Origin: Macrostomum lignano
Lineage: Eukaryota
DNA: 64,000 nucleotides
Direction: 5' to 3'
Assembly (NCBI GenBank): GCA_002269645.1
Contig: NIVC01001414.1
Span: 248,001 to 312,000, forward strand
Shown here: positions 1,424-28,378 of the stretch, piece by piece
How positions within the stretch are numbered: the first letter of the stretch is position 1
How the letters are laid out: each line of letters starts with the position of its first letter
Translations under genes and position numbers: made by a program
The notes under the pieces: generated by a model
What the model saw: only the letters and a program-made list of their open reading frames with translations
The model's database searches: none
Told to the model about the DNA's origin: nothing

Positions 1424-1945
1424 TCACGTCGTAGACAGTTTTCGAAGTGAGTCAGACTCTTTCGTCAGGAACTCGTGCTGCAGCAGCTCCACTGCGGGTC
1501 TTCTCTTCCTGCGGTCCTTGGCGGTGCAGCGGCTGTAGAAATCCATCAGCTCTGCGGACTGGCCGTCCGGCAGGGCGGGGGCGCCCCTCCTGTCAAGATG
1601 CTGGGCCATTTCCAAAAAGCTTTTGGCATCAGCAAAAGGCTCAGTACCGGAGGCCATCTGGAAGACCGAGCAGCCGAACGCCCAGATGTCCGACTCTCTG
1701 CTGTACCGCGGGCTGTCCGACTCTTCCGCTCCGAGCAGCTCTGGCGCCATGAAGTTCAGGGTGCCTTTGGGTGACTGAGTGGAGGCTGACATGTGGCTGA
1801 CTAACTGCTCCAGCTTGATTGACAAGCCGAAGTCGATCAGCTTGATTCGCGTGTTGTCAGCACAAACAATTATGTTCGAGCAGTTGATGTCTCTGTGGAT
1901 CACTGGCGGCTGCCGGCTGTGCAGGTAGAGCAGCGCGCGGCAGAT
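1424..1945 (-). CDS. Terminal exon of ankyrin-repeat Ser/Thr kinase gene: kinase C-lobe (STE/MAP3K-like)
   Basis: ICRALLYLH..PPVIHRDINCSNI..KLIDFG..GTLNFMAPE..DIWAFGC. Acceptor cactgaccgaccgctcgcag|ATC at 1945; TGA at 1424-1426. Joins in phase 0 to the exon ending FNKQ at 16623. Confidence 0.92.
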   Translation of the reverse strand: MCRALLYLHSRQPPVIHRDINCSNIIVCADNTRIKLIDFGLSIKLEQLVSHMSASTQSPKGTLNFMAPELLGAEESDSPRYSRESDIWAFGCSVFQMASGTEPFADAKSFLEMAQHLDRRGAPALPDGQSAELMDFYSRCTAKDRRKRRPAVELLQHEFLTKESDSLRKLSTT

Positions 1946-2965
1946 CTGCGAGCGGTCGGTCAGTGAGCAGTCAGCATTCATGGACAACTAGAGTATAAGG
2001 ACGTTATACTCAGCTTTAGTGGAAATCGAGCTGGAGGCCAAATTTTCGCGTAAATACACAAGCGAGATAGAAGAATATAATATTTTTCATGCGAAATAGG
2101 CAGCTAATTTGAGTCGAAGAAGCAGTGAAGTTCTTATTTTGATATAAGTTGAAGGCGTTATTGCTTTGTTGAATTTTATAAGGCTTTCATCGCGAAAGTG
2201 TTGCATTCTACTTTTTACATTTACATTATTATTATAATTATAAGGCATACTCTACTCTAGTAGGCCTCTGGCCTATCTAGTAGTATAGTATTCCCTACTA
2301 TTATTAATATTAGGCTATGTCTACTGTATTCAGTAAGGGACAATGACCAAGCCAGTATATACATCCAGCCTGTGTACTATCTGTAGTAGATCTCAAATTT
2401 CATGCCTATGATCAATATACTTAGTCCTATATACTAAAAATGAAATGCTTGGTTGCTTGCTTGTAATTGATTTTCTCCCGAACGGCTCAACCGATTTTCT
2501 TCAAACTTGCACCATTCGATCAGAAATTTTCCCGGGACGGTACATGCATATTGGCTAAGAAATTGCTCAATGTTAAAGGGATTAAATATTCGAAAAACAT
2601 GATTTTTTGCAAAGGTCAAGCAGCTCTTTCGACCTGAAATGCATTGTAAGAATGCTAGAGAAAAATCTGACTGGTTGAATTCTGATTCTGAAATAGATTG
2701 CATCACAATACACTTTATTTATCGTCTGTGTACTGGCTGAATTTGACACTCAATTGAATTGCGTCACAGCTTTGAGGGTGAAAGTATAGTGCAGTACTGA
2801 ATTTATATTACGTAACCATATTGTTAACTTTCATAGACACTGGTACTGACTTGCCTAAGAAATTGATTATGTCATAACTGCTTCGCGTGACTTTTTACTC
2901 TACCTGACTTGGTGTGAGTGTTGAATTAATTATATAAGTGGTACAAATTCACTGATAACTTCGAT

Positions 2966-3024
2966 GAGAGCTAGCCTAGAGCTGAGCAGACCAGACTGCT
3001 AATGCAGCGACCTGGGTTCGAATC
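2966..3024 (+). ncRNA. tRNA-derived (Ser-GCT-like) Pol III module inside the Helitron-like unit; further copies at 5303-5361, 8572-8630, 13381-13438
   Basis: A-box-like TAGCCTAGAG, anticodon-loop-like ACTGCTAA and B-box GGTTCGAAT, with T-runs downstream. No complete acceptor stem. Confidence 0.55.
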
Positions 3025-3097
3025 TAAGTAGTTTAAAAGTAGTAGTGTAAAATTTTTTATTAAAAGCTTTTATTAAAGGACTAAATAAAAACACTTA

Positions 3098-4998
3098 GAT
3101 TACTGCACTCGATAAGCTAAGGATTATTGCTCTTGGCAAACCAAGGAATACTGCACTCGATAAGCCAAGGATTATTGCTCTTGGCAAACCAAGGATTACT
3201 GCACTCGATAAGCCATGGATTATTGCTATTAATAAACCAAGGATTACTGCACTCGATAAGCCAAGGATTATTGCTATTAATAAACCATGAATTACTGCAC
3301 TCGATAAGCCAAGGATTATTGCTATTAATAAACCAAGGATTACTGCACTCATAAGCCATGGATTATTGCTATTAATAAACCAAGGATTACTGCACTCGAT
3401 AAGCCAAGGATTATTGCTATTAATAAACCAAGGATTACTGCACTCGATAAACCAAGGATTATTGCTATTAATAAACCAAGAATTACTGCACTCGATAAGC
3501 CAAGGACTATTGCTATTAATAAACCAAGGATTACTGCACTCAATAAACCAAGGACTATTGCTCTTGGCAAACCAAGGATTACTGCACTCGATAAGCCAAG
3601 GACTATTGCTCTTGGCAAACCAAGGATTACTGCACTCGATAAGGCATGGATTATTGCTATTAATAAACCAAGGATTACTGCACTCGATAAGCCAAGGATT
3701 ATTGCTATTAATAAACTAAGGATTACTGCACTCGATAAACCAAGGATTATTGCTATTAATAAACCAAGGATTATGCACTTGGCAAACCAAGGATTACTGC
3801 AATCGATAAGCCAAGGATTATTGCTATTAATAAACCAAGCATTACTGCACTCAATAAACCAAGGACTATTGCTATTAATAAACCAAGGATTACTGCACTC
3901 AAAAAACCAAGGACTATTGCTCTTGGCAAACCAAGGATTACTGCACTCGATAAGCCAAGGATTATTGCTATTAATAAACCAAGGATTACTGCACTCGATA
4001 AGCCAAGGATTATTGCTATTAATAAACCAAGGATTAATGCACTCGATAAACCAAGGATTATTGCTATTAATAAACCAAGGATTACTGCACTCGATAAGCC
4101 AAGGATTATTGCTATTAATAAACCAAGGATTATGCACTTGGCAAACCAAGGATTACTGCACTCGATAAGCCAAGGATTATTGCTATTAATAAACCAAGGA
4201 TTACTGCACTCAATAAACCAAGGACTATTGCTATTAATAAACCAAGGATTACTGCACTCAATAAACCAAGGACTATTGCTCTTGGCAAACCAAGGATTAC
4301 TGCACTCGATAAGCCAAGGACTATTGCTCTTGGCAAACCAAGGATTACTGCACTCGATAAGCCATGGATTATTGCTATTAATAAACCAAGGATTACTGCA
4401 CTCGATAAGCCAAGGATTATTGCTATTAATAAACCAAGGATTACTGCACTCGATAAACCAAGGATTATGCACTTGGCAAACCAAGGATTACTGCACTCGA
4501 TAAGCCAAGGATTATTGCTATTAATAAACCAAGGATTACTGCACTCAATAAACCAAGGACTATTGCTATTAATAAACCAAGGATTACTGCACTCAATAAA
4601 CCAAGGACTATTGCTCTTGGCAAACCAAGGATTACTGCACTCGATAAGCCAAGGACTATTGCTCTTGGCAAACCAAGGATTACTGCACTCGATAAGCCAT
4701 GGATTATTGCTATTAATAAACCAAGGATTACTGCACTCGATAAGCCAAGGATTATTGCTATTAATAAACCAAGGATTACTGCACTCGATAAGGCATGGAT
4801 TATTGCTATTAATAAACCAAGGATTACTGCACTCGATAAGCCAAGGATTATTGCTATTAATAAACCATGAATTACTGCACTCGATAAGCCAAGGATTATT
4901 GCTATTAATAAACCAAGGATTACTGCACTCGATAAGCCATGGATTATTGCTATTAATAAACCAAGGATTACTGCACTCGATAGCCAAGGATTACTGCG
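3098..4998. repeat. 24/48-bp satellite (taaaccaaggattactgcactcga / taagccaaggattattgctattaa)
   Basis: Alternating 24-mer variants; marker ggattatgcacttgg recurs near 3770, 4130 and 4465. Confidence 0.95.
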
Positions 4999-5039
4999 CT
5001 TGATAAGCTTGGCTACATGTATAGGATTATTTCTATCCA

Positions 5040-5260
5040 GGGATGCTTGCTATTTAAGGATTCTTGCTATGTGCAGGATGCTTGCTATCTGGAAGGATGC
5101 TTCTACATTATTTGGGGTATGCTTGCTATCTGCAAGATGCTTGCTATCTGCAAGATGCTTGCTATCTGCAAGATGCTTGCTATCTGCAGATGCTTGCTAT
5201 CTGGGTGGATGCTTGCTAGGAGTATTAGGGGATGCTTGCTACTGGGGGGATGCTTGCTGT
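5040..5260. repeat. Degenerate 18-bp tandem repeat (atgcttgctatctgcaag)n
   Basis: Direct tandem copies are visible at 5129-5200. Confidence 0.8.
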
Positions 5261-5418
5261 CTTGGGAATATTTTCTATTTAGGGGTAATGACTAAAATTC
5301 ATGAGAGCTAGCCTAGAGGTAAACAGACTAAACTGCTAAATGCAGGGACGATGGTTCGAATTTTTAGAGAGTAGAGTTTTTTTAATTAAAGCCTTTTAAC
5401 GCCAAGACAAAAAAAATT

Positions 5419-6480
5419 ATGGAAGCGTCATGTAAACAATCATACAAGCGTCATGTAAACAATCATAGAAGCGTCATGTAAACAATCATAGAAGCGTCAT
5501 GTAAAAATCATAGAAGCGTCATGTAAAAATCATAGAAGCGTAATGTAAACAATCATAGAAGCGTCATGTTAAAATCATAAAAGCGTCATGTAAACAATCA
5601 TACAAGCGTCATGTAAACAATCATAGAAGCGTCATGTAAACAATCATAGAAGCGTCATGTAAAAATCATAGAAGCGTCATGTAAAAATCATAGAAGCGTA
5701 ATGTAAACAATCATAGAAGCGTCATGTTAAAATCATAAAAGCGTCATGTAAACAATCATACAAGCGTCATGTAAACAATCATAGAAGCGTCATGTAAAAA
5801 AATCATAGAAGCGTCATGTTAAAATCATAAAAGCGTCATAAAAAATCATAGAAGCGTCATGCAAGCAATCATAGAAGCGTAATGTAAACAATCATAGAAG
5901 CGTCATGTTAAAATCATACAAGCGTCATGTAAACAATCATACAAGCGTCATGTAAACAATCATAGAAGCGTCATGTAAAAAAAATCATAGAAGCGTCATG
6001 TTAAAATCATAGAAGCGTCATGTAAACAATCATAGAAGCGTCATGTAAACAATCATAGAAGCGTCATGTAAAAATCATAGAAGCGTCATGTAAAAATCAT
6101 AGAAGCGTCATGTAAACAATCATAAAAGCGTCATGTAAACAATCATAGAAGCGTCATGTATACAATCATAGAAGCGTCATGTAAACAATCATAGAAGCGT
6201 CATGTAAAAAATCATAGAAGCGTCATGTAAAAATCATAGAAGCGTCATGTAAAAATCATAGAAGCGTCATGTAAAAATCATAGAAGCGTCATGTAAAAAT
6301 CATAGAAGCGTCATGTAAAAAATCATAGAAGCGTCATGTAAAAATCATAAAAGCGTCATGTAAAAAATCATAGAAGCGTCATGTAAACAATCATACAAGC
6401 GTCATGTAAACAATCATAGAAGCGTCATGTAAAAATCATACAAGCGTCATGTAAACAAGCATAGAAGCGTCATGAAAAAA
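5419..6480. repeat. 21-22-bp satellite (aatcatagaagcgtcatgtaaa[c]a)n, array 1
   Basis: Tandem units directly downstream of the tRNA-like head. Confidence 0.95.
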
Positions 6481-7444
6481 TTATAGAAGCCTCATATAAA
6501 AACTAATGAAAGTGTGTCATTTAAAAAATTAAGAAGCATCATGGAAGAATAAAAGAAGCGTAACGTAAAAATCAAAAGAAGCGTCATGTCAGACATGAAA
6601 GAAATGTCATATAAAAATTAAATGAAGCTATAGTACAGTGCTGTGCTGGGGAGAATTACTGAGACGTCAAGGCTCACAGAGAATAACTGAGATTACAGGG
6701 GGGTTTCTGAGATGTTAAAGCAAAAGTCAGAAGCTACTTCAAAGTACATGTACTTTACTTAAGTTTTTTATTGCATTCTTTGTTGGCTTGCCACGGTGGG
6801 GGGGGGCGCTGATAGAAGAAGAGTCATGTAAAAATAAAAGGAGCACTATGTATACATAAAATAAAAGTCATGTCAAAGTTAAAAGATTCATTTGGGAATT
6901 GCTACGATGTCAAAGCTTGGAGGGAATCGTTATAGTGCTGTGATTCTTAAAGAAGGAATCACTTAAATACCAAGGCTTAGGGAAGAAGAATTGCTGTGAT
7001 TTCAAGGCTTTAGGTTGGGTGAAAGTTAGGTTTACGTCAGGTTTGGGTTGAGGGTTAGATTTTAGCGCGTTTCAAGGTTAACAGGGGATTTTTTAGATTT
7101 CAAGGTTTATGGGGGCATCGCTGACATGTCAAGGCTTACGAGGGGAATCTATCTATCTATCTATAGCTGAGATGTCAAGGCTCACGGGGGAATAAATGAG
7201 ATGTCAAGGCTAATGTCAGAAGCTACATGTAGTTTATTGGAAAAAAGTTATTACATTATTTGTTGGCTCCTCACGGGAGGGATCGCTGATAGAAAAAGCG
7301 TAATGTAAAAAAAAAAGAAGCTTCATGTCAAAGTTAAGAGATTCATTTGGGAATCCCTACGATGTCGAGGCTTGCAGGGAATCGCTATAATGCTGTAGTA
7401 GTGCTATAGACTCTTAGAGAGAATTACTGAAATTTCAATGCTTT

Positions 7445-7476
7445 AGGGTTAGGGTTAGGGTTAGGGTTAGGGTTAG
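7445..7476 (+). repeat. Interstitial (TTAGGG)n in Helitron-like unit body; also at about 12622-12665 and 16147-16190
   Basis: 5-6 telomere-type hexamers at the homologous position in each unit. Confidence 0.9.
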
Positions 7477-8698
7477 AAAATAGACAGATTTTTTAAGATT
7501 TCAAGGCTTGTGGGAGCATTGCTGAGATGTCAAGGGGGGAGTTGATATGTTAAGGCTTGTGGGGGGGATTGCTGACATGTCAAGGCTTGTGGGGGGGATT
7601 GCTGACATGTCAAGGCTTACAAGGGTACTGGTAGCGTACTGAAGCATACTGGTAGAAGTAGCTCTGAAAGAAGGCAAGTATGGTTGAATTTCAATGTCTG
7701 TTATAAAATTCTGCACAAACATGTTTTATTGGTACATAAGCCTGGAATTAAAATGAGAATTCGATTCCTAGCCCCCCTCCCTAAGAATTTTTTTTCATTT
7801 AAAAGGATTCGTCCCTTGCTTATTGGCCACCCCGAAGGCCATTTTTTATCAAAAATGATAAAAATAATTTTTATCAAACACGTTGACATATACAGGGCTC
7901 TAAACTAAAAACTGTAAAAAGTTGATAGTTTTGTTTTACCTAAAATGCGTTATTAACGATCTCCAAAAATTCCTATTTTAAGCTTAAGCTTAAGAAAAAC
8001 ACTTAAAGTACTCCTGCTAAAAGGTATATTATATTAGACGAATATTAATTATTTCTGCTCCCCGAAGGGGGGCAAAACTTTAGCTAGTCCAATATACTAA
8101 AAATGAAAATCTTGCTTGCTTGTAATCGATTAGAGAAAAAATGGCTTAACCGATTTTTATGAGACTTGCACTGTTCGATCAGAAATTTTCCCGTGACGGT
8201 ACATGCATCGTGGCTAAGAAATTGCTCGATGCTAAAGGCATTAAATATTCGAAAAACATGCTTTTTTGCAAAGGTCAAGCAAACTTTTCGACTTGAAATG
8301 CATTGTAAGAATGCTAGAGAAAAAACTGACTGGTTGAATTCTGATTCTGAAATAGATTGCATCATAACTGAATTGTAACTCCGACTTGAATTGAAAATGC
8401 AGTGTGGAAGCGTAGCACAGACTTGATTTAAATTGCGTAACCATAATTGTTAACTGATACTGACTGACTGAGAAACTGATTATGTCATAACTGCTTCGTG
8501 TGATTTACTCTATGCTTGGATTTTAAAGTGTTGAATTATATAAGTGCAAAATTTGATGTTATCAAAACGATGAGAGCTAGCCTAGAGGTGAACAAACTGA
8601 ACTGCTAAATGCAGCGACGGTGGTTCGAATTTTCATAGAGTATAATTTTTTTAATTAAAGCTTTTCCACGTCAGGAAAACTAAAAGACTTTTTAAAAA

Positions 8699-11690
8699 GA
8701 AGCGTCATGTAAAAATCATAGAAGCGTCATGTAAAAATCATAGAAGCGTCATGTCAAAAATCATAAAAGCGTCATGTAAAAATCATAGAAGCGTCTTTTA
8801 AAAAAATCATAGAAGCGTCATGTAAACAATCATAGAAGCGTCATGTAAACAATCATAGGAGCGTCATGTAAAAAATCATAGAAGCGTCATGCAAACAATC
8901 ATAGAAGCGTCATGTAAAAATCAAAGAAGCGTCATATAAACAATCATAGAAGCGTCATGTAAACAATCATTGAAGCGTCATGTAAAAATCATAAAAGCGT
9001 CATGAAAAAATCATAGAAGCGTCATGTAAACAATCATTGAAGCGTCATGTAAACAATCATAGAAGCGTCATGTAAAAATCATAGAAGCGTCATGAAAAAA
9101 ATCATAGAAGCGTCATGTAAAAATCATAGAAGCGTCATGTAAACAATCATAGAAGCGTCATGTAAACAATCATAGAAGCGTCATGTAAAAAATCATCGAA
9201 GCGTCATATAAACAATCACTGAAGCGTCATGTAAACAATCATAAAGCGTCATGTAAAAAATCATAGAAGCGTCATGTAAACAATCATAGAAGCGTCATTT
9301 AAAAAATCATAGAAGCGTCATATAAACAATCATAGAAGCGTCTTTTAAAAAATCATAGAAGCGTCATATAAACAATCATAGAAGCGTCATGTAAACAATC
9401 ATAGAAGCGTCATGTAAAAAATCATAGAAGCGTCATGTAAACAATCATAGAAGCGTCATGTAAAAAATCATAGAAGCGTCATGTAAACAATCATAGAAGC
9501 GTCATGTAAACAATCATAGAAGCGTCATGTAAACAATCATAAAGCGTCATGTAAAAATCATAAAAGCGTCATGAAAAAATCATAGAAGCGTCATATAAAC
9601 AATCATAGAAGCGTCATGTAAACAATCATAGAAGCGTCATGTAAACAATCATAGAAGCGTCATGTAAAAAATCATCGAAGCGTCATATAAACAATCACTG
9701 AAGCGTCATGTAAAAAATCATAAAAGCGTCATGTAAAAAATCATAGAAGCGTCATGTAAAAAATCATAGAAGCGTCATTTAAAAAATCATAGAAGCGTCA
9801 TATAAACAATCATAGAAGCGTCATGTAAACAATCATAGAAGCGTCATATAAACAATCATAGAAGCGTCATTTAAAAAATCATAGAAGCGTCATATAAACA
9901 ATCATAGAAGCGTCATGTAAACAATCATAGAAGCGTCATGTAAAAAATCATAGAAGCGTCATGTAAACAATCATAGAAGCGTCATGTAAAAAATCATAGA
10001 AGCGTCATGTAAACAATCACTGAAGCGTCATGTAAACAATCATAGAAGCGTCATGTAAACAATCATAGAAGCGTCATGTAAAAATCATAGAAGCGTCATG
10101 TAAAAATCATCGAAGCGTCATATAAACAATCATGAAGCGTCATGTGAACAATCATAAAGCGTCATGTAAAAAATCATAGAAGCGTCATGTAAAAAATCAT
10201 AGAAGCGTCATGTAAAAAATCATAGAAGCGTCATGTAAACAATCATTGAAGCGTCATTTAAAAAATCATAGAAGCGTCATTTAAACAATCATAGAAGCGT
10301 CTTTAAAAAATCATAGAAGCGTCATATAAACAATCATAGAAGCGTCATGTAAACAATCATAGAAGCGTCATGTAAAAAATCATAGAAGCGTCATGTAAAC
10401 AATCATAGAAGCGTCATGTAAAAAATCATAGAAGCGTCATGTAAACAATCATGAAGCGTCATGTAAACAATCATAGAAGCGTCATGTAAACAATCATAGA
10501 AGCGTCATGTAAAAATCATAGAAGCGTCATGTAAACAATCATAGAAGCGTCATGTAAACAATCATAGAAGCGTCATGTAAACAATCATAGAAGCGTCATG
10601 TAAACAATCATAAAGCGTCATGAAAAAATCATAGAAGCGTCATGTAAAAATATAAAAGCGTCATGTAAAAATCATAGAAGCGTCATGTAAAAATCATAGA
10701 AGCGTCATGTAAAAATCATAGAAGCGTCTTAAAAAATCATAGAAGCGTCATGTAAACAATCATAGAAGCGTCATGTAAACAATCATAGAAGCGTCATGTA
10801 AAAAATCATAGAAGCGTCATGTAAACAATCATAGAAGCGTCATGTAAAAATCAAAGAAGCGTCATATAAACAATCATAGAAGCGTCATGTAAACAATCAT
10901 AGAAGCGTCATGTAAAAATCATAAAGCGTCATGTAAACAATCATAGAAGCGTCATGCAAACAATCATAGAAGCGTCAGGCAAACAATCGTAGAAGCGTCA
11001 TGTAAAAATCATAGAAGCGTCATGAAAAAATCATAGAAGCGTCATGTAAAAATCATAGAAGCGTCATGTAAACAATCATAGAAGCGTCATGTAAACAATC
11101 ATAGAAGCGTCATGTAAAAAATCATAGAAGCGTCATATAAACAATCATAGAAGCGTCATGTAAAAAATCATAGAAGCGTCATGTAAACAATCATAGAAGC
11201 GTCATGTAAAAAATCGTAGAAGCGTCATATAAAAATCATAGAAGCGTCATGTAAAAAATTATAGAAGCGTCTTGTAAACAATCATAGAAGCGTCATGTAA
11301 AAATCATAGAAGCGTCATGCAAAAAATCATAGAAGCGTCTTGTAGCAATCATAGAAGCGTCATGTAAAAATCATAGAAGCGTCATGTAAACAATCATAAA
11401 AGCGTCATGAAAAAATCATAGAAGCGTCATGCAAACAATCATAGAAGCGTCATGTAAACAATCATAGAAGTGTCATGTAAAAATCATAGAAGCGTCATGT
11501 AAACAATCATAGAAGCGTCATGTAAACAATCATAGAAGCGTCATGTAAACAATCATAGAATCGTCATGTAAAAATCATAGAAGCGTCATGCAAACAATTA
11601 TAGAAGCGTCATGTAAAAATCATAAAGCGTCATGCAAACAATCATAGAAGCGTCATGTAAACAATCATAGAAGCGTCATCAAAAGATCAT
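8699..11690. repeat. 21-22-bp satellite, array 2 (~3 kb)
   Basis: Same monomer as array 1. Confidence 0.95.
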
Positions 11691-13494
11691 AGAAGCCTCA
11701 TATAAAAACTAATGGAAGTGTCATTTGAGAAATCATAGAAGCGTCATGGAAGAATAAAAGAAGCGTCATGTCAGACATGAAAGAAGTGTCATGTAAAAAT
11801 TAAAAGAAGCTATTGTGCTGTGCTGGGAGAATTACTAAGATGTCAAGGCTCACGGAGAATAACTGAGATTTTGGGGAGGCGGTTTCTGAGATGCCAGAGA
11901 AGCAAAGTAGCAAACGTCAGAAGCTACTTCAAAGTACATGTAGTTTACTTAATTTTTTATTACATTCTTTGTTGGCTCGCTACGGGGGAGGGGGCGCTGA
12001 TAGAAGAAGAGTCATGTAAAAAAGAAAAGAAGCACTATGTATACATAAAAGAAGAGTCATTATGTCAAAGTTAAAAGATTCATTTGGGAATTGCTACGAT
12101 GCCAAGGCTTGGAGGGAATCGCTATGGTGCTGTGATTCTTAAATAAGGAATCACTAAAATGTCAAGGCTTAGGGGAGAAGAATTGCTGAGATTTAAGGCT
12201 TTAGGTTGGGTTAAAGTTAGGTTTAGGTCAGGTTTGGGTTGATGGTTAGATTTTAGCGGGTTTCAAGATTAACAGGGGATTTTTCAGATATCAAGGTTTA
12301 TGGGGGCATCGCTAACATGACAAGGCTTACGGGGGGAATAGCTGAGATGTCAAGGCTCACGGGGAATAACCGAGATGTCAAGGCTAAATTCACAAGCTAC
12401 ATGTAGATGATGTAGTTTATTGAAAAATGTTTTCATTATTTATTGGCTCTTCACGGGAAGGATCGCTGATAGATAAAGTGTAATGTAAAAAATAAAAGAA
12501 GCTTCATGTCGAAGTTAAGAGATTCATTTGGGAATCCCTACGATGTCGAGGCTTGCAGGGAATCGCTATAATGCTGTAGTGCTATAATGACTCTCGGAGA
12601 GAATTACTGAAATGTCAATGCTTTAGGGTTAGGGTTAGGGTTAGGGTTAGGGTTAGGGTTAGGTTTAGAAGGTTAACAGATTTTTTAAGATTTCAAGGCT
12701 TATGGGGGGAATTGCTAAGATGTCAAGGGGGAGTTGATATGCTAAGGCTTGTGGGGGGGGAGGAATTGCTGGCATGTCAAGGCTTACAAGGGTTTGCTGA
12801 GGTATAATGCAAAGAGACGCTTATATGTAGTTTATTAAAAAACTTGTGCTGTATTTTTTGGCTCCCCAACGGGGGGCGCTGATTGCTAGTCCTATATACT
12901 AAAAATGAAAATCTTGCTTGCTTGCTTGCTTGTAATCGATTAGAGAAAAAATGGCTTAACCGATTTTCATGAGACTTGCACTGTTCGATCAGAAATTTTC
13001 CCGTGACGGTACATGCATCTTGGCTAAGAAATTGCTCCATGTTAAAGGGATTAAATGTTCGAAAAACATGCTTTTTTGCAAAGGTCAAGCAAACTTTTCG
13101 ACTTGAAATGCATTGTAAGAATGCTAGAGAAAAAACTGACTGGTTGAATTCTGATTCTGAAATAGATTGCATCATAACTGAATTGTAACTCTGACTTGAA
13201 TTGAAAATGCAGTGTGGAAGCGTAGCACCAGACTTGATTTAAATTGCGTAACCATATTGTTAACTGATACTGACTGACTGAGAAATTGATTATGTCATAA
13301 CTGCCTCGTGTGATTTACTCTATGCTTGGAGTTTTGAAACTTATAATTATAAGTGCTAAAATTCATATTATCAAAACGATGAGAGCTAGCCTAGAGGTAA
13401 ACAGACTGACTGCTAAATGCAGGGACGATGGTTCGAATTTTTAGAGAGTGGAATTTTTTTAATTAAAGCTTTTTAACACCAAGAAGAAAACTAA

Positions 13495-15270
13495 AAAATC
13501 ATAGAAGCGTCATGTAAAAAATCATAGAAGCGTCATGTAAAAAATCATAGAAGCGTCATGAAAATATCATAGAAGCGTCATGTAAAAAATCATAGAAGCG
13601 TCATGTAAACAATCATAGAAGCGTCATGTAAAAAATCATAGAAGCGTCATGTAAAAAATCATAGAAGCGTCATGTAAACAATCATAGAAGCGTCATGTAA
13701 AAAATCATAGAAGCGTCATGTAAACAATCATAGAAGCGTCATGTAAACAATCATAGAAGCGTCATGTAAAAAATCATAGAAGCGTCATGTAAAAAATCAT
13801 AGAAGCGTCCTGCAGATATCGTAGAAGCGTCATGAAATAATCATAGAAGCGTCATGTAAAAAGCATAGAAGCGTCATGTAAAAATCATAGAAGCGTCATG
13901 AAAAAAACATTGGAGCGTCATGAAAAAATCATAGAAACGTCATGTAAAAATCATAGAAGCGTCATGTAAAAATCATAGAATCGTCATATAAAAAGCATAG
14001 AAGCGTCATGTAAAAAATCATGGAAGCGTCATGTAAAAATCATAGTAGCGTCATGTAAAAAATCATAGAAGCGTCATGAAAAAATCATAGAAGCGTCATG
14101 AAAAAAACATTGGAGCGTCATGAAAAAATCATAGAAACGTCATGTAAAAATCATAGAAGCGTCATGTAAAAATCATAGAATCGTCATATAAAAAGCATAG
14201 AAGCGTCATGTAAACAATCATAGAAGCGTCATATAAAAATCATAGAAGCGTCATATAAACAATCACAGAAGCGTCATGAAAAAATCATGGAAGCGTCATG
14301 TAAAAATCATAGAAGCGTCCTGCAGAAATCGTAGAAGCGTCTTGAAATAATCATAGAAGCGTCATGTAAAAAGCATAGAAGCGTCATGTAAAAAATCATG
14401 GAAGCGTCATGTAAAAATCATAGAATCGTCATATAAAAAACCTAGAAGCGTCATGTAAAAATCATAGAAGCGTCATGTAAAAAATCATGGAAGCGTCATG
14501 TAAAAATCATAGTAGCGTCATGAAAAAATCATAGAAGCGTCATGAAAAAAACATTGGAGCGTCATGAAAAAATCATAGAAACGTCATGTAAAAATCATAG
14601 AAGCGTCATGTAAAAATCATAGAATCGTCATATAAAAAGCATAGAAGCGTCATGTAAACAATCATAGAAGCGTCATATAAAAATCATAGAAGCGTCATAT
14701 AAACAATCACAGAAGCGTCATGAAAAAATCATGGAAGCGTCATGTAAAAATCATAGAAGCGTCCTGCAGAAATCGTAGAAGCGTCTTGAAATAATCATAG
14801 AAGCGTCATGTAAAAAGCATAGAAGCGTCATGTAAAAAAATCATGGAAGCGTCATGTAAAAATCATAGAATCGTCATATAAAAAACCTAGAAGCGTCATG
14901 TAAAAATCATAGAAGCGTCATATAAAAAGCATAGAAGCGTCATATAAACAATCACAGAAGCGTCATGAAAAAATCATGGAAGCGTCATGTAAAAATCATA
15001 GAAGTGTCATGTAAAAAATCATGGAAGCGTCATGAAAAAATCATAGAAGCGTCATGAAAAAATCATAGAAGCATCATGTAAAAATCATAGAAGCGTCCTG
15101 CAGAAATCGTAGAAGCATCATGTAAATAATCATAGAAGCGTCATGTAAACAATCATAGAAGCGTCATGAAATAATCATAGAAGCGTCATGTAAAAAGCAT
15201 AGAAGCGTCATGTAAAAAGCATAGAAGCGTCATGTAAACAATCATAGAAGCGTCATGAAAAAATCATAGA
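13495..15270. repeat. 21-22-bp satellite, array 3, with a 444-bp higher-order duplication
   Basis: Variant monomers cattggagcg (14108, 14552) and cctgcagaaatcg (14319, 14763) both recur 444 bp apart. Confidence 0.93.
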
Positions 15271-16622
15271 AGCCTCATTTAAAAACTAATGAAAGCGTCA
15301 TTTAAAAAATTAAGAAGCATCATGGAAGAATAAAAGAAGTGTAATGTAAAAATCAAAAGAAGCGTCATGTCAGACATGAAGGGTGTCATGTAAAAATAAA
15401 ATGCAGCTATAATGCTGTGCTGGGAAGAAAAACTGAGACGTAAAGGCTCTCAGAGAATAACTGAGATTACGAGGGGGGGTTGTTTCTGGGATCTCAAAGC
15501 AAAAGTCAGAAGCTACTTCAAAGTTCATGTACTTTACTCAATTTTTATTGCATTCTTTGTTGGCTCGCCATGGGGGGGTGCTGATAGAAGAAGAGTCATG
15601 TAAAAAATAAAAGTAGCACTATGTATACATAAAAGAAAAGTCATGTCGAAGTTAAAAGATTCATTTGGGAATTGCTACGATGTCAAAGCTTGGTGGAAAT
15701 CGTTATAGTGCTGTGATTCTTAAAGAAGGAATCACTAAAATGTCAAGGCTTAGGGGAGAAGAATTGCTGAGATTTCAAGGCTTTATGTTGGGTTAAAGTT
15801 AGGTTTAGGTCAGGTGTGGGTTGAGGGTTATATTTTATCGGGTTTCAAGGTTAACAGTGGATTTTTTAGATTTCAAGGTTTATGGGGGCCATCGCTGACA
15901 TGTCAAGGCTTACGGGGGGGAATAGCTGAGATGTCAAGGCTCACGGGGGTATAAATGAGATTTCAAGGCTAAAGTCAGAAGCTACATGTAGTTTATTGAA
16001 AACTTTTTATTACATTATTTGATGCCTCCTCAGGCGAGGGATCGCTGATAAAAAAAGCGTTATGTAAAAAATAAAAGAAGCTTATCGCTATAATGCTGTA
16101 GTAGTGCTATTATGACTCTTAGAGAGAATTACTGAAATTTCAATGCTTTAGGGTTAGGTTAGGGTTAGGGTTAGGGTTAGGGTTAGGGTTAGAAGGTTGA
16201 CAGATATTTTTAGATTTCCAAGGCTTATTGGGGGCATTGCTGAGATGTCAAGGGGGAAGTTGATATGTTAAAGCTGGGGGGGGAATTACTGACATGTCAA
16301 GGCTTACAAGGTTTGACAGGAGATTTTTTAAGATTTCAAGGATACATGTAGCTTATTAAAAAACGTGTATAGCATTTCTTTGGCTCCCCAACGGGGGCGT
16401 AGATTGCTAGTATATTACTAGAGCGTTATGGACAAGCATACAAACCTTAGAGATTTAGTATATTTAGATTGGGTGGCTTTAATTTTTGTTTACTTTTATT
16501 TGAAATGGTTAAATCAGATGTCAGGCATCCCAACACAATCATTACCTTTAAGTTTGATTTACTTAGAATTGTAACTGACGTATGATATTATCATATTTAT
16601 ATACTATTTGCACAATACTCAC

Positions 16623-19572: not shown

Positions 19573-19589
19573 CTGAGTGAGTTTCTGCA

Positions 19590-19785
19590 ACTGCAATTGA
19601 GGCACCCAAGCTGCACATTCAAACATGTGAGTGAGTTCCCGCAACTGCAATTGAGGCACCCAAGCTGCACATTCAAACATGTGAGTGAGTTCCCGCAACT
19701 GCAATTGAGGCACCCAAGCTGCTCATTCAAACATGTGAGTGAGTTCCTGCAACTGCAATTGAGGCACCCAAGCTGCACATTCAGG
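19590..19785. repeat. 54-bp tandem repeat abutting a splice acceptor
   Basis: About 3.5 copies; 18-aa periodicity in the ORF track. Confidence 0.85.
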
Positions 19786-20044: not shown

Positions 20045-20097
<53 letters not shown>

Positions 20098-21473: not shown

Positions 21474-21691
21474 AGAAGGGCTGCTGGCGAAAGTGACATG
21501 CATCGTTTCAGCAACCCCTGCTGAGGCAGTTCTGCCTATTGCGCTGACTCCTGAGCGCATACGGTACAAGAGCGTCAATACGGTACACAGGCACGCACTC
21601 ATACACACGATCACACAGGATGCATAGCGGTCCTGACTTTCTAATCGTCATACAGGTACATTCTGTGTGCCTTAGGGGTCGGCCCTGATGG
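21474..21691 (-). CDS. Putative exon with a GC donor; 1 nt longer than the in-frame paralogous exon
   Basis: ttcacag| acceptor and |gcgagt donor. The paralog at 46499-46715 is 217 nt and in frame; this copy is 218 nt. Confidence 0.4.
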
Positions 21692-21837
21692 CTGTGAATC
21701 ACAAAAAAACCCCAGCCAATGATCCGTGCACGAGCTCCTAATGAATGGGGCGGCGCACAGAATCAAAACTCTGAGCTGCTCTGCCGTTGTTTGGCTCCCA
21801 GACCTTGAGCCTGACCAGTTCAGGTATTTCTACTCAC

Positions 21838-22445
21838 TGCAGAAGATGCAAGCAGATGTCATCGTAGCCCTGCTTCCACGCAGACCAGTAGATGCTGGCG
21901 TATTTCTTGGCACCGCTGTCACGCAGAATCTCCGGCTCATGCTTCAGAACAGTCTTCACCAGCTCCAGGTTTCCAGCAGAAACAGCCATGGTCAGGGCAG
22001 ACTGACCGGCCTTGTCAGTGAGCTGAGAGTTGGCCCCGTTGTCCAACAGCATCTCTGCTACCGGAGCATTCTCCTCTTCTACTGCCAGCAGCAACGGCGT
22101 CATGCAGCTTCCATCTGCGCTGTTGATGTCTTCCCTGTGGTTTGCCAGCAAAGTGTTTAGCAGAGGAATGTTGTTGGAGAGGACGGCGCAGTGCCAGACG
22201 GAGTGCTTCCGGCTGTCTGCAGCTTGCGGATCAGCTCCTCTGCTGATGAGGATTTCGAAGCACTCGGCATGAGCCTCGGAGCCTTGAGAGAAGTCCGTGA
22301 CTGAGGCTGCTGCGGCACAGAGAAGGGCCGTGCGATGAGGAAACGATTCGTGTGGGTCTTGCAGCACTGACGGATCGGCTTCAAGGATTTGAGCGAGCTT
22401 TGACGCATCTCCGGTGGCTGCGAGATGATGCAGAGCTCTGGGAGT
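21838..22445 (-). CDS. Ankyrin-repeat exon (4-5 repeats)
   Basis: TPRALHHLAATGD, RTALLCAA, GADPQAADSRKHSVWHCAV, MTPLLLAV, GQSALTMAVSAGN; tttacag| and |gtgagt. Confidence 0.88.
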
Positions 22446-24758
22446 CTGTAAAGTTTATTTTGAAGCATATTTATATCAAATATATCAAAACTTACTGGCT
22501 ATGACGAAAATATTATCGCTAGTAGTTTTCTCGGGGGTTTCCAAGACAGCAGAATCTGTATTGTTCCATTGTCGTGCCGTGAATTTGGCATAAAGAAACT
22601 CAAGGTTTATTTTAACTAGCAAGTAGCTTATTTATTAATGACACGAGCAGGGGCTGAGAGAACACCGAAATAAAGTCACGTGATGATAATTAACCACGTA
22701 CAAGTACATGGAGGCTTAGGGGTACGGCCAGTCAGAGCGAAGGGAGAGGAAAGAATGGTGTGCACGTACGATGCACGTACATAGCATAAGTTAGTTAGTC
22801 AGTCAGTGCCTAGAGCTCAGCGCTCCGGCACCACATTCCCAAAGCAATCTCTGAAAGGGGTCCACTTCGATAGAAAGTCCTGCAACATCATATGCTTTTA
22901 CTTGCTACTTAATTAGTCAAGCAATGAATCACTGTTAGCAGACAATTACGAAAAAATAAATTTACAACAAACCCCAGATGTCTCACTGAGTTCCTATTAA
23001 ATATTTTATTATAAACAGCACGAGCCTCATTTAGAATTCGAGCTACATGCAAGAGTATCCTTCTCAGCGCCTGACTTTATACTGGCGCTGGCTTCCTGGC
23101 TGAGAACTTTAAACTAGCTGACTACTGTAGGCCTCCCAAACTGGAAGGCAACATTTTGAATCTACACCCCACCTTCAAACTCTCCGAGTCTGAGACGAGG
23201 CTGCTAGATAGGGGACTCAATTTTATCCCAACCCAAGCCCTTGATTTCGATGATTTGAGGAACTGCATGACGGAATTTCATCGTAAACTTTTCTGGAAAG
23301 ACTTTTTCAAAAAGAGGGGTCTTGCCAATACCAGCCCGCCCCCCCTTCACCGGGAAATCAGTGAAGGAGGTTCCCCTCAGACTTAGAAGGGATGAGTGCA
23401 ACTTGTTGGTACTTGAGAACCAAAATCTGGTAGAGAATTTGACAACGGTACAGATCAAAGGCAACCTAGAGGTACCAGAGACCTGGGCGATTCAGGGGCT
23501 CAAGCGAAACAGCTCCGTCCTTATAAAAAGCCGGACAAAGGCAACGCAGTGGTCATCATGCACCCCAAGGATTACGAATTTGCAGCCTACAACCAATTGC
23601 TTGACACTAATGCCTATCAACAGCTGGACCAGCCACTGCAACCCGAGACTGCGGAACTTATTAGGGGGATCTTCCTCAATTTATGTAACAGAAAGTTCAT
23701 TTCTAAGAAACAGTGTGCATTTCTTTGTCCCGGAGAGAACTTCCGTCCCCGGCATTTCTACCTGCTCCCAAAAATTCACAAGGACCCGGCCACCTGGCTG
23801 ATCCCCTTTCGGGTCCCAGCAGGCAGACCTATTGTTAGCGGATGCAGTTCTGAAGCAATTGGGGCAGAAAAGTACATAGACTTCTTTCTAAAACCGATTG
23901 CCCAAGCGCAACCCACTTTCATTAAGGACTCCTATGACTTCAAGCAGCCTATGACCTTATGGATAAAAGCTGCACAGAAGGTTCGACTCTGGCAACTTGT
24001 GATGTCCAGAGTCTGTACTCCATGATCCCAATAGATCAGGGCATTGCAGCGATCCAGGAATTCTTTAACCGATACCCGGATCCCATTAGACCGGATGCTG
24101 AAATAATAAAGCTACTGGAACTGTGTTTGTACAGGAATGACTTTGAATTTGACAAAATGATTTTCCTACAACTTAGAGGTACAGCCATGGGGCGCATATT
24201 TGCGCCCAGCTATGCCTGTCTCTTCATGAGCCTCTGGGAGGAAACTGCCCTGAGAACTGCTCTTTATAAGCCGAACATCTATTTTAGGTACATAGATGAT
24301 ATCTTCATTCACTGGGAACACCCGGCTGAAGCTCTGACAGAATTTGTTCGACACCTGAATTCAATCAACCCCAACATCAAACTCACCGTCAGCTCCTCAT
24401 CAACTGAGGTCAGTTTCCTTGACATGACCATCAGGAAAGCTGAAAACCGCTTCACAAGACAACTGTTTTCAAAAGAAACAGACACTCATAGATTGTTGCA
24501 CCGACAGTCCTTCCATCCGTCACACACCTTCAAGGGGGTAGTAAAATCCCAAGTCCTTCGGTACTCTCGTATCTGTGATGACTACAAGTCTTTCAACGAT
24601 GCTTTCAATTCTTTAAAATCGGAACTCAAGCAATTAGGCTACTCGAAGATTTTTCTTAGGAACTGCAAAAAGGAGGTCCTCAAACTTATGAACTGGACTG
24701 CGGGACCAACAACCAATCTGGGTCTGCTTCCTAAAGGGTTCCATCCCTGTGGGTCATC

Positions 24759-25366
24759 CACGGACTACTTTGTGTTTCGCATTTGCTTTATACAAGAAAC
24801 CTGTTATACCAATTTAGTCTATACCTTTTGCATACATTTTGATAAAAGCCTATAATATTAAAATGACATCAAAAAACATAATTGAATACTTAGACTTAAA
24901 TTATTATTCTCAAAATCTTTGTCTTATTTCGTCTTTTCACTCTTTTTATCCGATGCGATGGGCACAGAACCAGTGGTATCTATACCTGTACGTCTTCGAT
25001 AGGTTTTTCGTATGCCCAGGTTAAAGGTTCGCTCCACAGAGACAATCAACGGGGTAATACTGAAGCATCGTTTGAAGTAGGTGCTATATCAAGGTAAAGA
25101 GCCATATTTTATGCCATAGTGTCGCACTTCGAAACTCACCAGACAAAAGCTAGTACTCGTCGCTTGAAACTAATTTTAAGGTTTCTACATCGTTTTAATC
25201 ATACATTGCATATCTCACACCAACAAGGACTAAGTTATGTGCATCCTGTGAAAAAACTACACTTCGGCGAGTTTCTGGAGTCGGGCTACATAAAATTGAA
25301 TATTCAGCCTCCAATAAAATTTGCACGTTTCGCGCGTGTCGCGTCCTTCTACTTAAGTAGTCCGTG
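24759..25366. mobile_element. 608-bp non-autonomous TIR element (MITE) with 8-bp TSD, inserted in the PLE ORF
   Basis: Perfect 12-bp TIR CACGGACTACTT/AAGTAGTCCGTG; TSD GGGTCATC at 24751-24758 and 25367-25374. Confidence 0.93.
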
Positions 25367-26310
25367 GGGTCATCACGCTGCAAATGCTGCACCCACTCAC
25401 AACCTGCTCTCTCCGCCCAGGGGCTGAAACCGGCTTCCGGTTTTTTAATCTCTCAGAGCCTGTCCTGTGGCTCCAAGAATATCATCTATGGCATCTCCTG
25501 CAACCAGTGCCACCCTGGGAAGATCTTCTATGTAGGGATGACAAGAAGAACAATGAGAGATAGAATGAACCAACACAGGTCAAATATTAACAGGAGGGTC
25601 GTGACTTCGGGATCAGAGCACTTTCTCACCCCCAATCACTCGATTGCAAACTTTGTCTCCATTGCTATCGAACAAATTCTTAATAACAACAAAATCGAAC
25701 TTAGGGAAGAAATCTGGATTAAAAAACTGGGGACTGACAAACCGCCGGGTACGAACATCAGGGTCGACAATCATCTTCTCCGACCCATCCCATTGGTCCT
25801 TCCTTTTCACCCATCTACGGTCTGGCTTGCCAACGAGATTGCTAAAAACTTTGATAAGCTACAAAATAAACCAGGCTCCCGCATACTGCCCGCTTTTACA
25901 CGGCAACGTAACTTACAGAGCCTCCTGGCGCCCAATAAGTTCAAGTCTCAGCCAGGAAACATTTAATCATTTTAACCAATGCGCTATTTGTGCCTATAGA
26001 ACTACAATATTTATTCACTTTGTCGTGTATTTTACTCAAACTGCTTGATTGTACGCGCAAATATCGATTTTTATGCTCCCACCCTCAATACCGCATTTTA
26101 TTTAATCGTACTTCGAAAAAACAATTTTTTAATATACTAAATATACCGTCGCTTAAACTGACCGGTTGAAAGCCTCTGGGACAAGTTAGAGCTAGAATGA
26201 ACCCAGTTTAAATGTACACCCCTCATATGTACAGCAGCTCAGCAATTTTATTTGACTGAGAAAACTAATACTTAAAAGACCAACTTGCACTGCATGAAAC
26301 ACTGATTTTT

Positions 26311-26348
26311 GGCCTGACGAAGAGCCCAGAGGCTCGAAACCGGTAGCC
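26311..26348 (+). ncRNA. Minimal type I hammerhead ribozyme at the PLE 3' end
   Basis: GGC-CTGACGA-A-GAGCC caga GGCTC-GAAA-CCGG-TA-GCC: conserved core, stem II, palindromic stem III and stem I GGC/GCC. Confidence 0.8.
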
Positions 26349-27178
26349 CATATTAAATTAATTAGTCTTTTGATTTTTGAAACACGCCGTGACCTCTCTT
26401 CTCTCTCTCTCTCTCTACCTTTCTTTAGCTTTCAAATTATAAATCAGGCATGAAGTAACTGTATGGAGTTATACGAGTAGTTAAAAATCATGACAACGAG
26501 TACAACTTTGCTTGCATTATAAGGCAGCCACCGCAAGATTTCCTAACTTCAACATCCCTCTCTCCACGGAAGTTCAGACTTTCAAAGAGTAATCTCGGGT
26601 ACTTTCAGCACAACTATTACATTGAAGCGTATTCAATACGTTTCTAACGTATTCTGATTCCAGCTATGCAAATGCTTAATTATAATGCCACATTCTCTCA
26701 ATGAGAATCGTTAGCACAAACTTTTCACCGTTAAAATCCACCCGATTCCTTCCCCTGTCTCAAAACTGCAGAGAAGTCTTATGATTTTCAAAACAACTTT
26801 TTACTGGTTAGGGTTTTTCTATAAGTATCTGACCACCAGCAACAGAGTTTGAAATATTAAACAGCATTATATAGATCTGTTTATCTTCGCTCTAGAGACA
26901 TAGGTGTACTGAAGAATTTAAATGTTTAGAAATTTTTTCATCACAACGTTCAGAAAGTAAAAAAAGCAATCATACAAGATTAGACCATTGGCAATTAAAA
27001 GTATCAATAGAGAAGATGTTCTACGAGCGGAAGTCGACGCCCCTTTTTCTAGTTTTTTGCATAAAATAGTAGCTCTTACAGACAGAATTAATGCGATTTT
27101 GAGGCAGTGTAAAATTCTGTACTGAAAGATCTCATAACAATTACTACAAAAGCATTGTGCTGCTCTGCGACCACTTAC

Positions 27179-27227
27179 ATGTGCTGGAGATTCTGCATCA
27201 GCGCTCTCCTTTTGGGCTTCCTGAGCT
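27179..27227 (-). CDS. 49-nt exon (AQEAQKESADAESPAH)
   Basis: atttcag| ... |gtaagt; phase 2 to 0 joins the long ORF to the first ankyrin exon across the PLE-containing intron. Confidence 0.72.
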
Positions 27228-27296
27228 CTGAAATGGGACGATACATTGTGTCACCACTATGATAATGATAAAATTGCACTGTTAAAACTGTCTTAC

Positions 27297-28378
27297 ACTT
27301 TTGCTGCTGCCTGCAGCATGTGAGCGGTGTTTCGGCAGGGCACCGTGAAGCACTCCAGCTGAAACGAGTGCTCCTGAGCCAGCTGCTCACACTTGGAAGC
27401 CGCAGCACGCAGGAACTGGTCATCGCTGAACTCGCTTAGTACCTGTTCCGCTGACAGAGCTCCTGTGTCCTGATAGCATTCTCCTTGTTGAAAATCGAAT
27501 AGAATTACTCGGATTTTCAGGCCAGAATCCGATTCCACTCGAATTCGAGTCACGTCATGGTTGGGCAACCGCTTACGTTGACATTCGACTTCTTTTCTGG
27601 TCTTCAGGTACCATTCGCACGTGCTGATCTCGTTGAACAGAATGCACAGATAAACTGGCGTAGAACGCTTTGAGCTCTCAGCGATGCAATGCTCCAACTC
27701 TTCATTGACTGCTTCATCTTCTCCGTTTAAGCAGGAAGTCACAGCGACTCTCATCGAGCACTGGGGCTGATCTCCGATCGTCACCAACGCATCGCCTGCC
27801 GTCAAGTCCAAAAGTGACTCAAGACGGGTTTCTCCCGGGACCCTCAGTAGATGGCAGAACACAAAAGCGGATGACAGGAAATGCCTGATTGAAACGTCAT
27901 CAAGCAGCTGCGGTTGGACTGAGGATTTGAGTATTCGGTCAGCAGTGCTTGGATCGACTTGAATCCTGAGCTGCTTGACTCCAGTCACTTTGATCAGTTG
28001 CGATACAAGTCTGCACAGATCACCGAGCACTGGGGGAAAAGTTGCACTGAATCGCTCGCTTAAATTCGGCAAGCCCGTGAAGGTGACTTTTACCGAGTGC
28101 AATGAAGACACCACTGCATATGGAGCTTGATCCGATCCGGTCGTGTCTTCAGAATCATGAGCTTCCAGACTGGAAATCGTGATCTCACAGCCGGCGTCTT
28201 GGCTGTTGGAAGTTGTGAGTCTCAGAACTGGACTTGCCTCGACAGGTCTGCTTATGTTGTTACGTTTTGACTGAGAAGATCCCAGAATATCACACAGCTT
28301 GAGCACGGTTTGCCGGATGTCCACGCAATTTAGAATGTCCATACTTTCTTTGGTGATTGGATTTCGTTTTTTTGTTGG
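27297..28378 (-). CDS. Large exon (~360 codons) of unrecognised domain, N-terminal part of the ankyrin-kinase gene
   Basis: 349-aa stop-free, non-repetitive ORF; ttttttacag| acceptor at 28378 and |gtaag donor at 27296. Confidence 0.72.

Follow-up and report, generated by a model that had tools for sequence, protein, structure and literature searches.

Ankyrin repeats and protein kinase domains are combined in several described proteins, of which ILK and TNNI3K, both of the TKL group, place the repeats in front of the kinase, ILK being a pseudokinase. RIPK4/ANKK1 and DAPK show the reverse arrangement, with an N-terminal kinase followed by the repeats and, in DAPK, also by ROC-COR and a death domain, and LRRK is distinguished by its LRR, ROC-COR and WD40 domains. 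ASK1 (MAP3K5) and MEKK2 (MAP3K2), STE-group kinases of the STE11 type, have no ankyrin repeats. For platyhelminths, one study (PMC11463336) reports caspases with ankyrin repeats and, in Macrostomum lignano, a caspase whose pro-domain is kinase-like. Here we describe a gene of M. lignano that lies on the minus strand of a 64,000-nucleotide stretch (contig NIVC01001414.1, positions 248,001 to 312,000, GenBank assembly GCA_002269645.1); the whole stretch is called the window, and positions refer to it unless a contig or another locus is named. The predicted product consists, in this order, of an N-terminal head, two ankyrin clusters (ANK1 and ANK2), a linker of 85 amino acids (aa), two further clusters (ANK3 and ANK4) and a protein kinase domain (Pkinase, aa 1182-1452). 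With moderate confidence, the 27-kb part of the window is read as one intact protein-coding gene, in which recognition by the ankyrin repeats may control the kinase. Ankyrin-repeat kinases as such are known; an orphan head followed by ankyrin clusters in two pairs and by an STE-like kinase with a Lys-to-Asn exchange in the catalytic loop constitutes an undescribed architecture.

Each exon junction was read in the sequence, and the coding sequence (CDS) was then assembled by script. Twelve exons, running from 28342 to 1424 on the minus strand, join into a single open frame of 4398 nucleotides (nt) that encodes 1465 aa. The start codon is the ATG at 28342, the stop codon lies at 1426-1424, and no other in-frame stop is found in the joined CDS. 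The raw minus-strand open pieces comprise a 349-aa piece without a Pfam match, four ankyrin pieces and two Pkinase pieces. The gene and its exons (E1 to E11, with E6b) are arranged as follows.

1424..28342, minus strand: whole gene, 12 exons, corresponding to NIVC01001414.1 ~249424-276342.
28342-27297, minus strand: E1, 1046 nt; start codon and the orphan N-terminal head, aa 1-349.
27227-27179, minus strand: E2, 49-nt micro-exon, VAQEAQKESADAESPAH; the peptide is also in proteins P0121, P0245, P0246 and P0247.
22445-21838, minus strand: E3, 608 nt; ankyrin cluster 1 (ANK1), aa 366-568; Pfam Ank_2 4.8e-21; P0121 is 96% identical.
21277-21244, minus strand: E4, 34-nt micro-exon, QEKFGLNEHSIT; with a matching peptide in P0121, P0245 and P0247.
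21161-20761, minus strand: E5, 401 nt; ankyrin cluster 2 (ANK2), aa ~580-713; Pfam Ank 6.5e-17; phase-2 end GG|GTGAGA.
20429-20214, minus strand: E6, 216-nt linker exon with an in-frame ATG and one ankyrin-like helix; donor GTGAGT.
19867-19828, minus strand: E6b, 40-nt micro-exon, RAASSSITTLFKE; donor GT, as against GC in the sister copy.
19590-19013, minus strand: E7, 578 nt; ankyrin cluster 3 (ANK3), aa 799-991, matched by Pfam; acceptor TTGCAG|TTGCAG, phase 0.
18523-18469, minus strand: E8, 55-nt micro-exon, EMRLVVDADGWISGLTDQ; the same peptide is in P0053, P0043 and P0128.
18395-17911, minus strand: E9, 485 nt; ankyrin cluster 4 (ANK4), aa ~1010-1171, matched by Pfam; adjoins the kinase.
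16986-16623, minus strand: E10, 364 nt; kinase N-lobe with GRGGFG, AAK and the alpha-C Glu; Pkinase positions 2-108; donor CAG|GTGAGT.
1945-1424, minus strand: E11, 522 nt; kinase C-lobe with HRDINCSN, DFG and APE, and the stop; Pkinase positions 105-263; acceptor CGCAG|ATC, phase 0.

All 11 junctions are in phase and use AG acceptors and GT[A/G]AG donors, GT[G/A]AG being the cis-donor motif of M. lignano (PMC8629364). The exons are 85-100% identical to M. lignano proteins, but E6 reaches only 48% over 52 aligned positions against P0247 (tblastn). Together, 11 canonical in-phase junctions, an open frame of 4.4 kb and these identities go far beyond what chance would be expected to produce. A preliminary description of the stretch, made from the letters alone, had proposed one gene in one frame across 27 kb with the same domain order, which agrees with the 12 in-phase exons and the absence of an internal stop. 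Its length of 4581 nt in 13 exons does not agree; the extra 183 nt and the thirteenth exon could not be reproduced. Among its three micro-exons, those of 49 and 55 nt are recovered, whereas the one given as 33 nt measures 34 nt, and the 40-nt E6b had not been listed. The GC-donor exon of 217 nt is E6, which has 216 nt and the GT donor GTGAGT; GC occurs instead at the 40-nt exon of the sister gene and in the E6-like exon of a partial paralog inside the window. The gene had also been called unannotated, which holds for its last exon, over which no gene is called, but not for its start, since UniProt A0A1I8G7V9 covers residues 1-507, nor for the sister gene, which is annotated.

The junctions are backed by different sets of relatives along the gene. 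The path E1-E2-E3 is that of UniProt A0A1I8G7V9 (P0246, 520 aa), 100% identical to residues 1-507, and the junctions from E1 to E5 are backed by P0121, P0245 and P0247. At the other end, E7-E8-E9-E10-E11 are supported by P0043, P0053, P0128, P0130, P0131 and P0141, and E7 is 85-92% identical to many M. lignano proteins, with the same acceptor used in P0128 and P0247. The link between ANK2 and ANK3 is provided by the sister gene, BOX15_Mlig001598g12 (P0247, 831 aa); no other retrieved protein spanned it. In P0247, ANK2 is followed by a long linker exon, a 40-nt exon whose donor is GC (GCAAGT), and then LQELTQPDP, the start of the ANK3 exon. The path E5-E6-E6b-E7 in the window is thus the exon path of the sister, including the sister's GC-AG intron; the counterpart of E6b in P0247 is RATSSSVVTLNEE, joined to LQELTQPDP, and E6 is homologous to the P0247 linker as well as to the partial paralog in the window. 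The M. lignano gene set derives from RNA-seq transcripts that were split at trans-splice and poly(A) sites (PMC5730564), and it is unlikely that the GC-AG intron of P0247 stems from ab initio prediction. A single mRNA covering all 12 exons is, on these comparisons, probable, and we hold to it with good confidence.

Several other models of this region were set aside. One with 11 exons, in which a 77-nt E6 (donor G|GTAAGC) is followed by an upstream acceptor (GTGCAG|CT, 'WVP' start), has an open frame of 1412 aa and was dropped because the sister P0247 shows the path E6(216)-E6b(40)-E7. A gene end at the stop directly after E5 was rejected, because the phase-2 pattern, in which GG|GTGAG reads through to TGA, is the same at three confirmed internal donors (E3, E7 and E9). 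The micro-exon YDGKIYF.. (14 aa) of some paralogs is absent from the window copy. At the end of E1 (27297-27299), two donors lie 2 nt apart (AAAA|GT|GTAAGA). With the upstream one, E2 is read in a frame that meets a stop after 9 codons, which yields a head-only protein of ~359 aa, comparable to the UniProt entry P0122 (360 aa); such a product could be an isoform or a prediction artefact.

The joined kinase matches Pkinase (PF00069) with 163.7 bits against a cut-off of 31.7, over profile positions 2-263 of 263, which places it in the protein kinase superfamily. Of the core motifs it keeps the GRGGFG G-loop, AAK (the AxK motif), the alpha-C Glu, HRD, Asn, DFG and APE, and Ser and Thr are abundant in its activation loop. 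The best PDB matches are ASK1 and MEKK2 (E ~1e-27, ~100 bits), which align with most of the domain (22-285 of 294 for ASK1; 8-281 for MEKK2) and have the layout HRDI..N / DFG / APE in common with it. They differ in having no ankyrin repeats and in keeping the catalytic-loop Lys (HRDIKGDN), and the match is distant. TNIK, SLK and WNK1 follow with 87-91 bits, and then MST3 and PAK1. The domain is described as STE/MAP3K-like, with no claim of orthology to ASK1 or MEKK2 because the scores of STE20-type kinases and WNK1 are close behind. Judged by its sequence, the kinase is probably active. The loop HRDINCSN (~1880-1860, minus strand) is found exactly in 41 retrieved relatives. The HRDIN variant also occurs in unrelated kinases with a cNMP-binding domain (P0055, P0068, P0072, P0082, P0089, P0100 and P0112), of which one or more are bacterial; the word index of the search favours such matches.

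The kinase matches also bear on whether the gene is a plain ortholog of ILK, TNNI3K, RIPK4/ANKK1, DAPK or LRRK, an explanation that was rejected as very improbable. In its favour stands only the fact that ankyrin repeats and a kinase domain occur together. However, the best PDB matches are mostly STE-group kinases, none of the named families is among the best 60, and the nearest relatives outside Macrostomum are generic kinases of ~30% identity. ILK and TNNI3K resemble the window gene in carrying ankyrin repeats before the kinase, but have neither the head nor four separate ankyrin clusters, and the intact HRD and DFG of the window kinase set it apart from ILK. Its domain order is opposite to that of RIPK4/ANKK1 and DAPK, and Pfam finds no other domain in the protein. 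A death domain, LRR, ROC-COR and WD40 were not found by Pfam, and ANK_LRRK2 remains below threshold (23.2 versus 27.5 bits).

Four clusters of ankyrin repeats in the 1465-aa protein are matched by Ank_2 with 188 bits over 9 matched stretches, which identifies an ankyrin-repeat protein. A gap of ~10 residues separates the last cluster, ANK4, from strand beta-1 of the kinase. The ratio of nonsynonymous to synonymous substitution (dN/dS) was computed by the Nei-Gojobori method, pairwise between genomic copies, and the resulting values, which are mutually dependent and may include gene conversion, are as follows.

E1, head: dN/dS 0.56.
E3, ANK1: dN/dS 0.62.
E5, ANK2: dN/dS 0.39.
E7, ANK3: dN/dS 1.31, six genomic copies.
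E9, ANK4: dN/dS 1.78, six genomic copies, 0 with a stop.
E10, kinase N-lobe: dN/dS 0.57.
E11, kinase C-lobe: dN/dS 0.41.

Across 26 proteins, the high-entropy columns of ANK4 fall on repeat positions 2, 3, 5, ~10, 13 and 14, and the framework positions (G, TPL, AA, LL, GA) are conserved. In designed ankyrin-repeat proteins, these variable positions are the ones that contact the target and are chosen for randomisation. Diversifying selection on ANK3 and ANK4 is suggested by these patterns, as a lead and not as proof.

The head (aa 1-349) has no Pfam family even at E<=10, and a seven-sequence profile gave no sequence match in PDB. An AlphaFold2 (AF2) model from seven sequences reached a mean per-residue confidence (pLDDT) of 55 and a predicted template-modelling score (pTM) of 0.57, whereas that from three sequences (pLDDT 35) was unusable; a Foldseek search with the seven-sequence model returned a best E of only 0.3. 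An exhaustive phmmer search of 1.84 billion representative proteins yielded five related proteins or clusters, all from M. lignano. The invariant residues include D108, C110, H164, C233, N237, E238, Y245, R258-N261, D307, D308, C331 and V334-R337, and the conserved Cys, His, Asn and Asp among them would be compatible with metal binding or with an active site. Candidate roles for the head are regulatory, oligomerising or enzymatic. A Ras-association (RA) domain, after which UniProt names the head-only relative P0122 'Ras-associating', is unsupported, Pfam being empty at E<=10.

The window gene belongs to a Macrostomum family in which ANK3, ANK4 and the kinase form a unit, with 85-92% identity to many members and shared exon junctions. 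Uncharacterised M. lignano paralogs (BOX15_Mlig015152g1, i.e., P0128, 699 aa; Mlig013011g1; Mlig017273g1) have the same arrangement ANK3-E8-ANK4-kinase at 85-89% identity, and the same junctions and HRDINCSN loop. They differ in starting from a short Met exon of their own and in being without the head, ANK1, ANK2 and the linker; the YDGKIYF.. micro-exon is present in some of them. The sister P0247 shares the other half, namely the head, ANK1, ANK2, E6, E6b, the start of E7 and the splice path. The window gene unites two cassettes that are also found separately in M. lignano, head-ANK1-ANK2 and ANK3-ANK4-kinase. The HRDINC motif is present in ~46 M. lignano clusters (90% identity), and kinase identity drops from 86-89% within M. 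lignano to ~30% outside, where generic kinases are found. These figures support a lineage-specific, expanded family, which is seen only in M. lignano and has never been studied.

Much of the preliminary description is borne out at the level of domains. The region of ~360 aa that it did not recognise is the 349-aa head, which Pfam, PDB and fold searches likewise left unmatched; its four ankyrin clusters with linkers are matched by Pfam Ank and Ank_2, and the STE/MEKK-like assignment agrees with ASK1 and MEKK2 as top PDB matches. The profile and fold analysis of the joined protein that it had called for returned the 163.7-bit Pkinase and the ankyrin matches. It had recognised no RIPK4/ANKK1, ILK, TNNI3K, DAPK or LRRK arrangement, in accord with their absence from the best 60 PDB matches and with the failure of Pfam to find their extra domains; neither the kinase matches nor the domain content would make the protein a plain ortholog of a known kinase family. 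Its suggestions of a lineage-specific family and of local expansion fit the confinement of head relatives to M. lignano, the ~30% kinase identity elsewhere, the paralog count (~46 clusters) and three tandem copies on the contig.

Both cassettes also occur with other effectors. ANK3-ANK4 forms the pro-domain of caspases in P0147, P0148, P0160, P0163, P0165 and P0177 (65-85% identity), with Peptidase_C14 at 9.6e-43 in P0147. These M. lignano caspases share the cassette with the window gene, which carries a kinase effector instead and has no Peptidase_C14 by Pfam, and they link the kinase family to the reported platyhelminth ankyrin-caspases (PMC11463336). P0245 (BOX15_Mlig015600g2, 1783 aa) contains head-ANK1-ANK2 at >=90% identity, followed by more ankyrin-like repeats and a Mab-21_C domain that is just over threshold (Pfam 26.4 bits, cut-off 24.1). 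All 14 PDB matches of its C-terminal domain are MAB21L1 or cGAS, and they are weak (best E 0.006). At locus L001 (NIVC01000414.1, L001 1-17354), three ANK3-ANK4 cassettes lie in tandem before one kinase, and an annotated gene of 699 aa uses part of them; cassette number therefore differs between loci. Loci L002 and L003 were rejected as orthologs of the window locus, being other cassette copies with different upstream sequence.

Three tandem copies are found on NIVC01001414.1, and the window gene is the only complete one. The sister begins 8.6 kb downstream of where the window-gene CDS ends and lies in locus L004 (NIVC01001414.1 213110-250854, reversed), whose first 2854 bases are 100% identical to window 1-2854 in reverse. 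It is 92-96% identical in nucleotide sequence over the head and ANK1-ANK2 exons, with a far more diverged E6. Most of its ANK3 and all of ANK4 are deleted, its open reading frame (ORF) ends in a microsatellite, and its kinase exons are left as orphans: the E10 donor is mutated (CAG|TTAAGC) and E11 contains a stop. Since the start of E7 and the two kinase exons still flank the deletion in the sister, the head-to-kinase order predates the tandem duplication. The third copy lies upstream of the window gene.

42700..47518, minus strand: upstream truncated paralog, E3-E6b only; a pseudogene fragment with 75-95% identity by blastn.

Its ANK1 is frameshifted near 47290, its E6 contains a stop-bearing insert of 24 nt (tblastn), and the GC inside its E6-like exon stands at the site that matches the internal GTAAGC of the window-gene E6. 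The sequence after it (41079-40763) is of the kind usually found 3' of the kinase gene, with ~84% identity to window 29-348.

A number of these observations weigh against one intact gene with a working kinase. Throughout the family, Asn stands in place of the catalytic-loop Lys (HRDINCSN, against HRDIKGDN in the ASK1 alignment), and the interdependence of the dN/dS values, together with possible gene conversion, tempers the selection signal. Moreover, the model of the window copy rests on genomic sequence and protein comparison, the transcript-based evidence being that of the sister gene. The remaining points concern two alternatives. In the first, one transcription unit would give two mature mRNAs. 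A head-ANK1-ANK2 message would end after E5 or E6, and spliced-leader trans-splicing at the E7 acceptor would produce a separate message for ANK3-ANK4-kinase; the ATG would come from the leader, the product would start M-LQKLTQPDP and have ~670 aa, and the 1465-aa protein would be rare or absent. In M. lignano ~30% of genes are trans-spliced, operons are present, the spliced leader ends in ATG and the trans-acceptor is [T/C]TNCAG (PMC8629364), a consensus that the phase-0 E7 acceptor TTGCAG fits. Several M. lignano protein fragments start exactly at LQELTQPDP, and an AATAAA lies between E5 and E6. Stand-alone genes are the rule among kinase-cassette relatives, most of which (dozens) have ~700 aa and a first exon of their own, and head proteins without a kinase exist (P0240, 703 aa; P0242; P0243). 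By contrast, the sister gene, from a transcript-built set, cis-splices E6b onto the same acceptor through its GC-AG intron, all three intervening junctions are in phase with consensus donors, and the end of E5 resembles an internal donor rather than a terminal exon. Both outcomes could, besides, coexist as isoforms. Two separate genes, one for the head part and one for ANK3-ANK4-kinase, had been considered as well; that reading was downgraded after P0247 and the phase analysis, and survives as the trans-splicing alternative, which we regard as unlikely.

The second alternative is a recent chimera in the tandem array, unexpressed or decaying, whose open frame would merely reflect its youth. Both neighbouring copies are broken, so that two of the three tandem copies are degenerate, and no gene is called over the last exon (E11) in the indexed Mlig_3_7 gene set (GCA_002269645.1). 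The intron inside the kinase domain is huge and filled with satellites, 14.7 kb here versus 76 nt in the sister, with conserved ends, and a dN/dS of 0.4-0.6 on most exons indicates moderate constraint. Nevertheless, 4398 nt are free of stops and frameshifts and 22 of 22 splice sites are intact despite 4-7% nucleotide divergence from the sister in E1, E3 and E5; in the sister, by contrast, one donor is already gone and a stop has arisen. The kinase and ANK2 exons show a dN/dS of ~0.4. A decaying chimera is accordingly considered quite improbable, and the intact gene with a single mRNA remains the preferred reading.

For this intact gene, a mechanism of recognition and activation is proposed tentatively. 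The ankyrin clusters would be protein-binding surfaces for partners, and ANK4 would probably be a diversified recognition module beside the kinase, because it ends ~10 residues from beta-1 and varies at few positions per repeat. Engagement of a partner, or clustering on it, would switch on the adjacent effector by proximity or by relief of autoinhibition. The effector here would be a scaffolded kinase that phosphorylates itself or a downstream substrate of the mitogen-activated protein kinase (MAPK) type on Ser/Thr; in the paralogs, the same cassette would drive a caspase by proximity-induced activation. From the dN/dS >1 and hypervariable columns of ANK4, and from the sharing of cassettes with caspases and the Mab-21-like protein, we infer a possible role as an immune sensor. 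More speculatively, and with little confidence, the locus may be part of a germline-diversified ankyrin recognition system, in which hypervariable ANK3-ANK4 and species-restricted head-ANK1-ANK2 cassettes are shuffled by segmental duplication onto alternative effectors of three kinds (STE-like kinase, caspase and Mab-21/cGAS-like nucleotidyltransferase). In its logic, such a system would be akin to NLR-type or death-fold sensors of innate immunity and cell death, built from different parts.

The family is large, lineage-restricted and modular, with signs of diversifying selection in the ankyrin cluster beside the effector. FADD and DED caspases, components of extrinsic apoptosis, are reported lost in platyhelminths (PMC11463336), and transgenesis exists for M. 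lignano (PMC5730564). If its expression and function prove true, the family would offer a tractable entry to innate-immune or cell-death signalling in flatworms. The annotation is also corrected, as current gene sets hold only fragments of the window gene.

The introns contain repeated and mobile sequence.

1946..16622, minus strand: intron 11, 14.7 kb, within the kinase domain; filled with satellites according to Tandem Repeats Finder (TRF).
23055..26416, plus strand: degenerate Penelope-like retroelement in intron 2, on the opposite strand to the gene; Pfam RVT_1 and GIY-YIG, with ORFs split over frames.
19574..19783, minus strand: 54-bp minisatellite, 3.9 copies (TRF); it repeats the E7 acceptor and the first E7 bases.

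Intron 11 holds a 48-bp satellite (3098-4997, ~40 copies) and 23-bp arrays at 5411-6589, 8698-11810 and 13493-15369 (52, 137 and 84 copies), with a dispersed element of ~0.3 kb present three times (2434-2706, 8084-8365 and 12777-13175). The Penelope-like copy recurs at 94-95% identity in L003 (5643-7846), next to another ankyrin cassette. By duplicating the E7 acceptor, the 54-bp minisatellite multiplies the candidate acceptors; its repeat is also found in L001 (10089-10486) and in L002 (5051-6711, ~30 copies), where the array is annotated as a 488-aa 'gene' (L002 5342-6808).

A gene for an MFS transporter (MFS_1 2.4e-17) lies at ~35500-38900 on the plus strand, between the tandem copies, and is part of the repeated unit; a copy at L004 32462-37745 has 91-97% identity and introns with microsatellites. 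At 48000-64000, long TC-rich satellite tracts produce a strongly negative GC skew (-0.2 to -0.7) and many spurious Leu/Ser-rich plus-strand ORFs, and a unit of ~2-5 kb recurs (e.g., 50476 and 54464; 51019, 52917, 55025 and 58047).

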